A DNA stretch of 64,000 nucleotides, taken from positions 1-64,000 of the forward strand of contig NIVC01001291.1 of assembly GCA_002269645.1 (NCBI GenBank). The letters run 5' to 3'. Position numbers and translations under genes: made by a program. Below, in pieces: positions 26,401 through 28,797 of this stretch. The stretch comes from Macrostomum lignano (lineage: Eukaryota). Below the pieces are notes generated by a model that did no database searches, was not told the origin of the DNA, and saw nothing but the letters and a program-made list of their open reading frames with translations. The first letter of the stretch is position 1, and the number at the start of each line of letters is the position of its first letter.

Positions 26401-28797
26401 AAATCTGCATTATCCCAGAATCCTTTAAATCTGCATCATCCCAGAATCCTTTAAATCTGCATTATCCCAGAATCCTATAAATCTGCATCATCCCAGAATC
26501 CTTTAAATCTGCATCATCTCAGAATCCTTTAAATCTGCATTATCCCAGAATCCTTTAAATCTGCATTATCCCAGAATCCTATAAATCTGCATCATCCCAG
26601 AATCCTTTAAATCTGCATCATCCCAGAATCCTTTAAATCTGCATTATCCCAGAATCCTTTAAATCTGCATCATCCCAGAATCCTTTAAATCTGCTTGCAT
26701 CATCCCAGAATCCTTTAAATCTGCTTGCATCATCCCAGAATCTTCTCTAAATCTGCATCATATCAGAATTCTCTAAACCGGCGTCATCCTAAAATCCTCT
26801 AATTCTGCATCATCTCAGACTCAGAATCCTCTAAATTTGCATCTCATAATCCTTTAAATCTGCATTATCCCCGAATCCTTTAAATCAGCATCATCTCAGA
26901 CTCAGAATGCATACTTCTAAATACTGCTGCAGATTCCTTAAGCATCCCCATATTCACACTCAAACAGTCCTATATTTCATTTTATCTGTTTCTTTTTTCA
27001 CGCGCTAATCCTATCAATTGAATTCTCCCCAACAACCGCGACCAGACCGTGAGCTCCTGCGCCTGGCGAGTTGACAGAGCCATGCTCCGCTTGATAACTG
27101 ACCGCTTCAATTCTGGCGGCGCCGAGCACCTGGCGCTGCCTGCCCGACCCCGATCTGTAGAGCGCCTGGCGCCTCCGGCTCCGGGCGCGTCGAGGGCCGA
27201 CATCGCCGCCCTACGCCGGGAGAAAGCGGCCGAGCGCAAAGCTGAAAGGGAGCGCTATTCTCTCTGGTGCACGGAGCTTTACCGGCTGTCCATTGCCGAT
27301 TGGCTGAAGGACCGGCCGTTCTACTTGCCGCATAATATGGACTTCCGGTGAGTAGTCGGTTAGTAATAATATATTAACTATTATAATTACGAGCGTAGTA
27401 TAATCTATATGCTAATTTTGCGCTGTTTGTTTGTCTGTCTTTCTGTCTGTCTTTGAATTTTTCGAGAACCGTCTGGCTGAGAAATAAAGCCGATATGTAT
27501 CGAAAAATACAAAACTGCACAAAAAAGCCGATATGTATCGAAAAATAAAATAAATTTTTGCAGAGGCCGGGCCTACCCAATGCCGCCCCATCTGAACCAC
27601 ATGAGCTGCGATCTGTCCCGCTCGCTGCTTCGCTTCAACAATGCCAAGCCTCTGGGCGAGCGCGGCTGGCGCTGGCTCCGCATTCACGCCATCAATGTGG
27701 CGGATCTTGGCAAAAAATTGACAAACGCCGAACGGCTAGACATGGCCGACTCGCTGCTGCCGGACATCATCGACAGCGCCGAACGGCCCTGGACCGGGCG
27801 CGGCTGGTGGCAGAACGACGAAGCTCCCTGGCAGACTCTAGCCACGTGCTCTGAGATCCTCGCCGCTGCCAGGCATCCAGACGGGCCGGAACGCTACGTG
27901 AGTTCGTTCCCTGTGCACCAGGACGGCAGCTGCAACGGACTGCAACACTACGCCGCAATGGGCCGGGATGTGGCCGGCGCTCTGGCTGTCAATCTGCGAG
28001 CGGTTGACCGGCCGCAAGATGTCTACCAGGCTGTTGTAGATCTGGTAGAGTCTACCAGAGTAGCCGATGCCGCTCAAGGTCACGCGGTTGCCCAGTCGCT
28101 TCAAGGCTACGTAGTTAGGCGCACAATCAAGCAGTCGGTGATGACCACAGTCTACGGCGTCACGGAGTACGGCGCCATACAGCAGATCCTGGCCAGGCTG
28201 AAGGACGCTGAGTTCCCTAGCGAGATGCGGCACAAGGCAGCAGCCTATTTGGCTAAACTGACCCTGTCCAGCATTGGCAGGATTTTCACTAGCGCCACCC
28301 ACATTCAGCACTGGTTCACCGATCTGGCCAAGGACGTGGCCAAGCTGAGGCAGGCTTCAATCCAATGGCGAACTCCGCTAGGCCTGCCCATTGTGCAGCC
28401 GTATCCGCCCGATCCGGTCAAACAGTCCAACGCGTTTCCGCCTAATTTTGTGCACTCGCTCGACTCGTGTCATATGATGCTAACGGCATTGGAGTGCCAG
28501 AAGTTTGGCGTCACTTTTGCCGCGGTGCACGACTGCTTCTGGACGCATCCGTGCGACGTGGACGCCATGGGCAGGATCTGTAGGCAGCAGTTTGTCCAGC
28601 TGCACAGCAAGCCAATCCTAGCCGATCTCAGCTCGCATATTGATCGCGTGTTCTCATTTCGTCAGTCAGAATTGGCCAGCCTCAGCGGCCAGAAGCTGCA
28701 GGCTGCTAAGCGATTTAATTCTCGAATTCTGCAGATTCCCGACAAGGGCGACTTCGATCTGTCCGAGGTGTTGCGGTCCGAGTATTTCTTCTCCTGA
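20474..28797 (+). CDS. POLRMT: Mitochondrial T7-like RNA polymerase; exons ~20474-20531, 21766-22322, 22991-23191(?), 23385-23432(?), 23829-24191, 25480-25854, 27046-27347, 27564-28797
   Basis: Presequence-like N-terminus MLPLLRIFALSETQQICRHCFAARQQR. Motifs [57 protein letters not shown] and the YFFS end. Splice phases agree; exons 3-4 are uncertain. Confidence 0.95.
20556..21572 (+). repeat. POLRMT intron 1 minisatellite, 24-bp unit GAATCGCCCCTAGACTACCTTTCA, diverging along the array
   Basis: ~40 tandem units starting ~25 nt after the donor. Confidence 0.95.
22416..22935 (+). repeat. POLRMT intron 2 minisatellite, ~24-bp unit GAGAATCGCCCCTAGACTACCATT
   Basis: Tandem units; same family as the intron 1 array. 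Confidence 0.95.
23570..23794 (-). mobile_element. tRNA-derived SINE with a CORE-like central domain, in a POLRMT intron
   Basis: Minus strand has A-box GCCTAGTGGTTAAAG and B-box GGTTCGATTC, then GTGTCCATGAGCAAAAGACAC..CAGTTCACCCAGCTGTAAAATGGG, resembling the MIR/CORE motif. No acceptor stem. Confidence 0.65.
24203..25275 (+). repeat. POLRMT intron minisatellite, 32-bp unit GCTGATGGGATCTTAGATCTGTGGGATCCTAA (~32 copies)
   Basis: Tandem units visible. Confidence 0.95.
26025..26910 (+). repeat. POLRMT intron minisatellite, 26-bp unit ATCTGCATCATCCCAGAATCCTTTAA
   Basis: Tandem units, decaying after ~26760. Confidence 0.95.

Follow-up and report, generated by a model that had tools for sequence, protein, structure and literature searches.

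To our knowledge, the specificity loop is one of three canonical promoter elements in every single-subunit RNA polymerase (RNAP) that has been studied, namely T7 RNAP, yeast Rpo41, plant RpoT and human POLRMT. This loop confers promoter specificity in the T7, yeast and plant systems, and in T7 RNAP (residues 739-770) and Rpo41 it makes base-specific contacts with the promoter. According to Nayak et al. (2009), as that work is cited in PMC5040748, an element of 26 +/- 3 residues occupies the loop position in most or all phage-type RNAPs. In human POLRMT the published loop comprises residues 1085-1108, with T1101 and N1103 reading template positions -4 and -3, while a second element, the lever loop, also termed the B2-hairpin (residues 588-604), is the part of the polymerase that binds TFB2M (PMC11642874). 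When residues 1087-1099 of the loop are deleted from human POLRMT, the engineered enzyme retains activity on an RNA-DNA scaffold but carries out no promoter-driven transcription (Morozov et al., 2015; PMC4402542). A 2023 survey of metazoan mitochondrial DNA (mtDNA) states that knowledge of how invertebrate mitochondria are transcribed, and by which machinery, is scarce (PMC9871016), and our literature search found nothing on the mitochondrial RNAP (mtRNAP) of flatworms or on loss of the specificity loop in flatworms or any invertebrate. Here we describe the POLRMT gene of the flatworm Macrostomum lignano, the product of which has no specificity loop. The gene lies in a window of 64,000 nucleotides, which is the whole stretch of DNA that was analyzed (NIVC01001291.1, positions 1-64,000, of the M. 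lignano assembly GCA_002269645.1, Mlig_3_7; 100% identical to the contig) and to which all coordinates below refer unless another sequence is named.

The POLRMT gene and its loop-less junction

A preliminary description of this DNA had assigned positions 28370-28470 to a mitochondrial T7-like RNA polymerase with intact motifs A, B and C, and had held that the specificity loop was missing except for one residue and could not be restored by splicing. On translation, these positions are enclosed by an uninterrupted open reading frame (ORF) at 27580-28797 (+), and the identification is borne out by a match to PF00940 (RNA_pol) over profile positions 1-448 of 448 (E 1e-139, 466.7 bits). The PDB matches of the same ORF include every human POLRMT chain (E ~3e-122), yeast Rpo41 (1e-89) and T7 RNAP (~1e-39), which places the M. 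lignano enzyme in the same single-subunit family as the latter two.

The ORF forms most of the last exon of a seven-exon gene on the forward strand, and all six introns of this gene are bounded by GT-AG. Exon 1 (20474-20531), which was placed by tblastn of the full-length protein PAA78571.1 against the window, opens with ATG, specifies MLPLLRIFALSETQQICRH and contributes the first base of the codon after it, ahead of a GTAAGT donor at 20532; its product is presumed to be the mitochondrial presequence. The N-terminal extension and putative helical-repeat region are encoded in exon 2 (21766-22322), which is flanked by an AG acceptor and a GT donor and specifies a cysteine at residue 93 where a second genomic copy has arginine. 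Exon 3 (23033-23367) contains a 1-bp deletion in a run of C at ~23326-23327. The conserved N-terminal domain starts in exon 4 (23829-24191), which also holds the internal methionine (MLASIQ...) of the GenBank model, and it continues in exon 5 (25480-25854), which HMMER aligns to human POLRMT 569-719 and in which the putative intercalating hairpin and the lever-loop position are found. Exon 6 (27046-27347) ends in ...PHNMDF and two bases of an arginine codon that is completed by exon 7, with a GTGAGT donor, and the palm and fingers are specified by exon 7 (27564-28797), whose product runs from GRAYP to YFFS and whose stop codon is TGA. When spliced and read from the internal methionine, the product is exactly GenBank PAA69783.1 (BOX15_Mlig015290g1, 670 residues) in an exact-sequence look-up, and this match validates exons 4-7 of the model. 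The gene is thus already present in GenBank and UniProt, either unnamed or automatically named "DNA-directed RNA polymerase".

The loop-less junction is located within exon 7 at 28396-28449 (+), where the QPY anchor (28396-28404) is separated from FPPNF (28435-28449) by ten residues (28405-28434). Alignment with the C-terminal fragment of the human protein equates QPY with residues 1080-1082, FPPNF with 1119-1123 and the ten residues between them with K1109-G1118, leaving the 26 human residues R1083-R1108 with no counterpart in M. lignano; HMMER splits the alignment to human POLRMT chains into two stretches exactly at the QPY junction. As the unmatched segment includes the whole published loop (1085-1108), and with it T1101 and N1103, the specificity loop is wholly absent. 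The earlier account was therefore correct that the loop is gone, although by the human alignment the number of loop residues that remain is zero and not one. It was equally correct on splicing, since the tyrosine codon (28402-28404) abuts the proline codon that starts at 28405, with zero nucleotides between them from which a loop could be supplied. Between the QPY/QEY strand and the KQ..PNF helix there is no specificity-loop hairpin of 26 +/- 3 residues, and the M. lignano enzyme is an exception to this element of phage-type RNAPs, at least in the form in which the generalization is cited. The loop being a functional hallmark and not the basis of homology, we class the protein as orthologous in descent but variant in its mechanism.

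The catalytic core is retained. Motifs A, B and C are intact, as had been described, and their residues form invariant columns in a 61-sequence alignment: the catalytic aspartate of motif A at 27922-27924, motif B at 28129-28158 (lysine at 28129-28131, Tyr-Gly at 28153-28158) and the His-Asp of motif C (AVHDCFW) at 28528-28533, all on the forward strand. Also invariant with the 60 homologues are DFRGR (the T/DxxGR motif), which spans the intron between 27347 and 27564, and the C-terminal YFFS. The AlphaFold2 (AF2) model of the last-exon product has a mean predicted local distance difference test (pLDDT) score of 94.2 and a predicted template modeling (pTM) score of 0.90, and displays the right-hand palm and fingers fold of single-subunit RNAPs. 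Foldseek gives this model template modeling (TM) scores of 0.92 to 4BOC, the elongation complex of human POLRMT (root-mean-square deviation 2.6 Å), 0.82-0.86 to yeast and 0.81-0.85 to T7 structures. To judge from these motifs, the M. lignano enzyme would still polymerize RNA. At the junction, AF2 places the strand IVQ, a six-residue turn (PYPPDP) and a palm helix starting from V279 (VKQ), all with pLDDT values of 92-94, and the truncated fold is predicted to close cleanly where the loop has been excised. Foldseek alignments gain ~21 columns when the target structure has a resolved loop, relative to targets with a disordered one.

Human POLRMT (e.g., PDB 4BOC, 6ERP, 9MN4) is the orthologue both by fold and by sequence, with ~48% identity over the last 405 residues. 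The two enzymes have in common the catalytic motifs, DFRGR and YFFS at the C-terminus, and a hairpin predicted in M. lignano may correspond to the intercalating hairpin; they differ in the loop itself and in two human residues that contact downstream DNA, R1113 and K1116, which are valine and serine in M. lignano.

Loop length in other polymerases and the lever loop

The extent to which other enzymes approach this condition was assessed from the spacer, defined as the number of residues between the QPY-type and FPPNF-type anchors. Both anchors were present in 249 sequences, which derive from the 120 best database homologues and from an exhaustive HMMER scan in which a 49-residue probe centred on the junction was run against 1.84 billion representative proteins and the 150 best hits were taken. 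The M. lignano spacer is 10 residues, compared with a minimum of 15, a median of 34 and values of up to 66 or more among the 249 homologues. The minimum is shared by Cyprideis torosa, an ostracod, and Ampulex compressa, a wasp, in which only five residues stand in place of the loop (QPYFKAPGRPNTVKQ in the ostracod and QPYYKSVKQLDIHKQ in the wasp) where M. lignano has zero. Spacers of 18 and 19 occur in an enzyme from a Logan contig and in a chytrid, and the nematodes Syphacia, Caenorhabditis angaria and Meloidogyne have spacers of 22. The Cyprideis junction sits within a single continuous exon (L003, 5785-6297, CAJPEW010001643.1), thus its short spacer is real and no splicing artefact. As both species are unrelated to flatworms, the near-losses in Cyprideis and Ampulex look independent of the flatworm loss, and they also look to be undescribed. 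Overall, these lengths suggest that the loop has been reduced several times in animals and that M. lignano represents the extreme of a continuum as opposed to a singular event.

Some apparent cases of loop reduction were rejected. A plant model with a spacer of 16 (P0250) has probably had its loop spliced out as a false intron, as seen by comparison with P0240, and two proteins that seemed loop-less from the best-stretch coordinates of the representative search (P0121 and P0155) actually carry long inserts.

Parasitic members of the same phylum differ from M. lignano in the opposite direction. Trematodes (Fasciola, Paragonimus) and cestodes (Hymenolepis, Hydatigera, Taenia, Dibothriocephalus/Spirometra) carry an unrelated stretch of 55-66 residues at the position of the loop, which in M. 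lignano is empty. Their inserts end in LPxP[ND]P[IV]KQ, to which PPDPVKQ is the equivalent in M. lignano, and the pattern P-x-P-[ND]-P-[IV]-K-Q before NAFPPNF is shared by the free-living and parasitic enzymes. The canonical hairpin therefore seems to have been lost or remodeled across the sampled flatworms, and the outcome in the basal, free-living lineage is the opposite of that in the parasites. The cestode inserts look partly helical (e.g., ...WVAALTRAARRIERQ...).

A second promoter-related element is probably reduced in M. lignano as well. At the lever-loop site in exon 5, between LTY and RGVP (25576-25596, +), approximately 12 residues (human M589-S600) of the 17 that make up the human lever loop (588-604) have no counterpart in either the HMMER pairwise or the MAFFT alignment. 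The distance from the glycine of ELGK to the histidine of HP is 33 residues in M. lignano, compared with 47 in human POLRMT and 43-65 in 13 other mtRNAPs, among which are a cestode, the wasp Ampulex and the short-loop Logan enzyme. At the level of the alignment, in a variable region, the TFB2M-docking lever loop is thus not found in M. lignano, and its loss is probable; the region is poorly conserved and alignment confidence there is low, but the length deficit itself is robust. The lever-loop segment is kept in Ampulex and is long in Spirometra, and the Cyprideis model does not cover this region. The adjoining segment, TYGVL-DPDSNV-QHIRA (25600-25647, +), aligns to human residues 605-624 as the putative counterpart of the intercalating hairpin and is ~2 residues shorter. 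In the AF2 model of the 670-residue product, its strands are placed at residues 75-79 and 86-90, with a pLDDT of only 60-72 and weak sequence conservation.

Two genomic copies and their surroundings

POLRMT is present at a second locus (L001, NIVC01000678.1), which encodes PAA78571.1 and shares 97-98.7% nucleotide identity with the window. Its exons are the same as those of the window and their translation is exactly PAA78571.1, a full-length protein of 1074 residues that starts with MLPLLRIF... and in which ~400 residues precede the conserved N-terminal domain. Synteny extends over both loci (DUF4062 STAND-NTPase, Ig-domain gene, POLRMT, CTU1, RPL15) and the junction DNA is identical in the two. 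The 90% cluster consists of PAA69783.1, PAA78571.1 and two UniProt entries from the older ML2 assembly, and 4/4 of these are loop-less with the same junction. The two loci are recent duplicates or homeologues, both with transcript-supported models; the DV1 line has duplicated chromosomes, with 180 Mb in blocks that are at least 95% identical (PMC5730564). A paralogue that bears the loop was not seen in the 90% cluster, which covers four models and two loci, and no genome-wide search for one was made.

Comparison of the copies speaks to the history of the deletion. The 3.2-kb coding sequence differs at 11 positions, of which nine are synonymous and two non-synonymous (Q15H and C93R); both replacements fall in the poorly conserved N-terminus, with zero non-synonymous differences after codon 93. 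If ~75% of changes are expected to be non-synonymous under neutrality, we calculate a binomial probability of ~1e-4 for two or fewer out of 11. The excess of synonymous over non-synonymous differences thus points to purifying selection on the loop-less protein since the copies diverged. The comparison shows that the loop was lost before the divergence of the two copies and that, by this count of substitutions, the loop-less state has since been maintained by purifying selection.

It should be noted that the two copies are not equally intact in the assembly. In the DNA alignment, the C run in exon 3 reads CC in the window (~23326) and CCC in L001, and if this 1-bp deletion is real it shifts the reading frame and leads to a stop at codon 338 in the unrepaired coding sequence. 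This is also why GenBank models the window copy from the internal methionine only. The deletion may be a real frameshift or an error left over from PacBio sequencing of a homopolymer; in ML2, the model with the Cys93 variant of the window copy is in frame.

Long tandem-repeat arrays with periods of ~24-52 bp fill the POLRMT introns and 3' flank (20550-21600, 22399-22940, 24256-25294, 25988-26900 and 28917-29417). Their copy number differs between the two genomic copies of the gene, in which exons are GC-rich and introns AT-rich.

Several other genes were recognized in the window. CTU1 (31001-33294, +), which encodes the cytoplasmic tRNA 2-thiolation protein 1 with its PP-loop and zinc-ribbon, lies immediately downstream of POLRMT, and RPL15 (34390-35452, +) follows 5.6 kb downstream of POLRMT, with a product 100% identical over 204 residues to M. 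lignano RPL15 in UniProt (an entry that represents six identical sequences). The DUF4062 gene, syntenic at the second locus, is a single-exon ORF of 904 residues (8316-11030, -) with a weak STAND/AAA NTPase match and is NLR-like, and the Ig-domain gene (13105-13929, +) encodes a membrane protein. A RING-finger (C3HC4) ORF is found at 4394-5371 (+) and a mitochondrial carrier family exon at 51453-52001 (-). Mobile elements are represented by the N-terminal remnant of a mariner/Mos1-type transposase (18755-19342, -; HTH_48, HTH_32) and by a non-long-terminal-repeat retrotransposon with reverse transcriptase and RNase H, accompanied upstream by an ORF in which a PHD finger is combined with an endonuclease/exonuclease/phosphatase domain (38295-41264 and 42689-43981, -). 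A separate RNase H fragment on the opposite strand (41557-42459, +) suggests nested or rearranged retrotransposon copies. An Rfam search of the window returned zero RNA families.

Transcription initiation with a loop-less polymerase

How might mitochondrial transcription start with such an enzyme? We consider it likely that the M. lignano POLRMT orthologue has had its loop excised in frame, that this state has been selectively kept and that the choice of start site is supplied elsewhere, with accessory proteins as the likeliest source. One in-frame deletion would have taken the whole specificity loop and a second most of the lever loop, while the palm, fingers, thumb and the equivalent of the intercalating hairpin would have been kept. 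The resulting enzyme would be without the loop-DNA contacts that read positions -4/-3 and the major groove from -7 to -10 in the human, yeast and T7 systems, and start-site selection would have to come from elsewhere because the enzyme would be unable to make them. The M. lignano mtDNA (14,193 bp) has one large non-coding region (9,444-10,165 of the mtDNA, ~720 bp) with tandem repeats (PMC5446695), and accessory proteins may recruit the polymerase to this single region and melt the DNA there, with the remaining hairpin and the N-terminal domain holding the bubble open. Minus-strand transcription among flatworms was first reported in Stenostomum (PMC5446695), which implies that the mitochondrial genes of M. 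lignano are on one strand. If so, a single loosely specified start could serve the whole mtDNA, and selection for fine promoter discrimination may therefore be weak.

The engineered human enzyme provides an experimental parallel, as its deletion takes the tip of this hairpin and spares the catalytic core, and it predicts an enzyme that works on a scaffold and fails on promoters. It carries a 13-residue laboratory deletion, whereas the 26-residue deletion of M. lignano is natural and under purifying selection, and an animal that keeps such a deletion would have to have a working alternative. Since removal of the loop tip abolishes promoter-driven transcription by the human enzyme, a changed initiation mechanism in M. 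lignano mitochondria appears to be a sound inference. The most economical form of such a change is that factors direct the polymerase to the single non-coding region, and relaxed, structure-driven initiation is the main alternative. For primase-like initiation, which the preliminary description had also put forward, there is no specific support.

Several points weigh against a start site supplied by accessory proteins. The mechanism is deduced from the gene and its predicted product. The spacers of 15 in the ostracod and wasp and of 22 in nematodes show that the loop is evolutionarily labile, and losing it may thus call for a smaller change of mechanism than would be expected from the human data. 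The conclusion on the lever loop comes from a poorly conserved, low-confidence alignment in a region where the AF2 pLDDT is 60-72. The window copy is possibly defective through the 1-bp deletion in exon 3, with the intact copy at L001. Additionally, the absence of a paralogue is not proven, as the word-indexed homology search missed M. lignano proteins that are 100% identical to the query.

If neither the specificity loop nor the lever loop is present, both the choice of the start and the melting of the DNA could be independent of TFB2M and be performed by a different factor or by the DNA structure of the non-coding region. We regard this as a tentative possibility, and such an arrangement is undescribed in animals.

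The mechanism could also be essentially that of human and yeast mitochondria, with specificity residing mainly in TFAM, TFB2M and other POLRMT surfaces (the G-helix, the PPR domain and the intercalating hairpin), such that loss of the loop would have changed affinity and not mode. Conserved base pairs are very few in human promoters, which depend strongly on factors (PMC7939475), and the wide variation in loop length among animals (from spacers of 15 in the ostracod and the wasp and 22 in nematodes to 55-66 unrelated residues in cestodes and trematodes) is in keeping with this; however, the loss of promoter-driven transcription upon deletion of the human loop tip and the apparent truncation in M. 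lignano of the very lever loop on which TFB2M docks make this unlikely in our assessment.

Without the loop, and perhaps without docking of TFB2M, initiation may alternatively have become relaxed or promoter-independent, with many starts in melted, AT-rich or repeat non-coding DNA or genome-wide, and with RNAs defined only by processing of the polycistron. Compatible with this are the factor-free activity of mtRNAPs on single-stranded and bubble templates (PMC7939475), the compact mtDNA with a single repeat-bearing non-coding region that is itself weakly transcribed (PMC5446695), and the reduction of both the promoter-contact and the factor-docking elements in M. lignano. We nonetheless rate it as rather improbable, as retention of a putative intercalating-hairpin counterpart suggests that a defined bubble edge is still formed, and purifying selection is uninformative on specificity.

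The loop-less gene could, moreover, be a duplicate that is decaying or non-essential, the working polymerase being a paralogue that bears the loop and has escaped detection. The frameshift in exon 3 of the window copy with its GenBank product of only 670 residues, the extensive duplication in M. lignano DV1 (PMC5730564) and the ability of the homology search to miss M. lignano proteins all speak for this. Yet the second copy is full length (1074 residues) and equally loop-less, the 9:2 ratio of synonymous to non-synonymous differences indicates constraint, the six introns keep GT-AG, the only proteins in the 90% cluster, from two assemblies, are loop-less, and the deletion lies in a homopolymer of a PacBio-based assembly while the ML2 model bearing Cys93 is in frame. 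A decaying gene is thus highly improbable. An assembly or consensus artefact that dropped a 78-nt loop-coding segment, the eventuality that the preliminary description had asked to be checked, is very unlikely indeed and close to negligible: the same PacBio reads underlie both ML2 and Mlig_3_7, which are therefore not fully independent (PMC5730564), but the junction is identical at two loci that otherwise differ by 1-3% and in four gene models, the Canu PacBio assembly Mlig_3_7 was polished by Pilon on the basis of Illumina and RNA-seq reads and was annotated in GenBank from a genome-guided RNA-seq transcriptome (PMC5730564), and an in-frame, clean excision of exactly one hairpin, modeled by AF2 with a pLDDT of 92-94, is unlike assembly errors.

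The loss of the loop in M. lignano is a finding at the level of sequence, and its mechanistic consequence is what we infer from it. A loop-less enzyme under purifying selection would mean that an animal is able to run mitochondrial transcription in the absence of this element, and would offer a natural experiment on the share of initiation that is performed by the polymerase as opposed to its factors. As RNA interference, transgenesis, a sequenced mtDNA and abundant RNA-seq data are available for M. lignano, which serves as a laboratory model, the question is directly testable in this organism. The loop region appears to be unexpectedly labile in animals, which bears on the evolution of mitochondrial promoters, and its variation among flatworms and other animals also bears on whether drug-relevant differences exist between the enzymes of parasites and those of their hosts.

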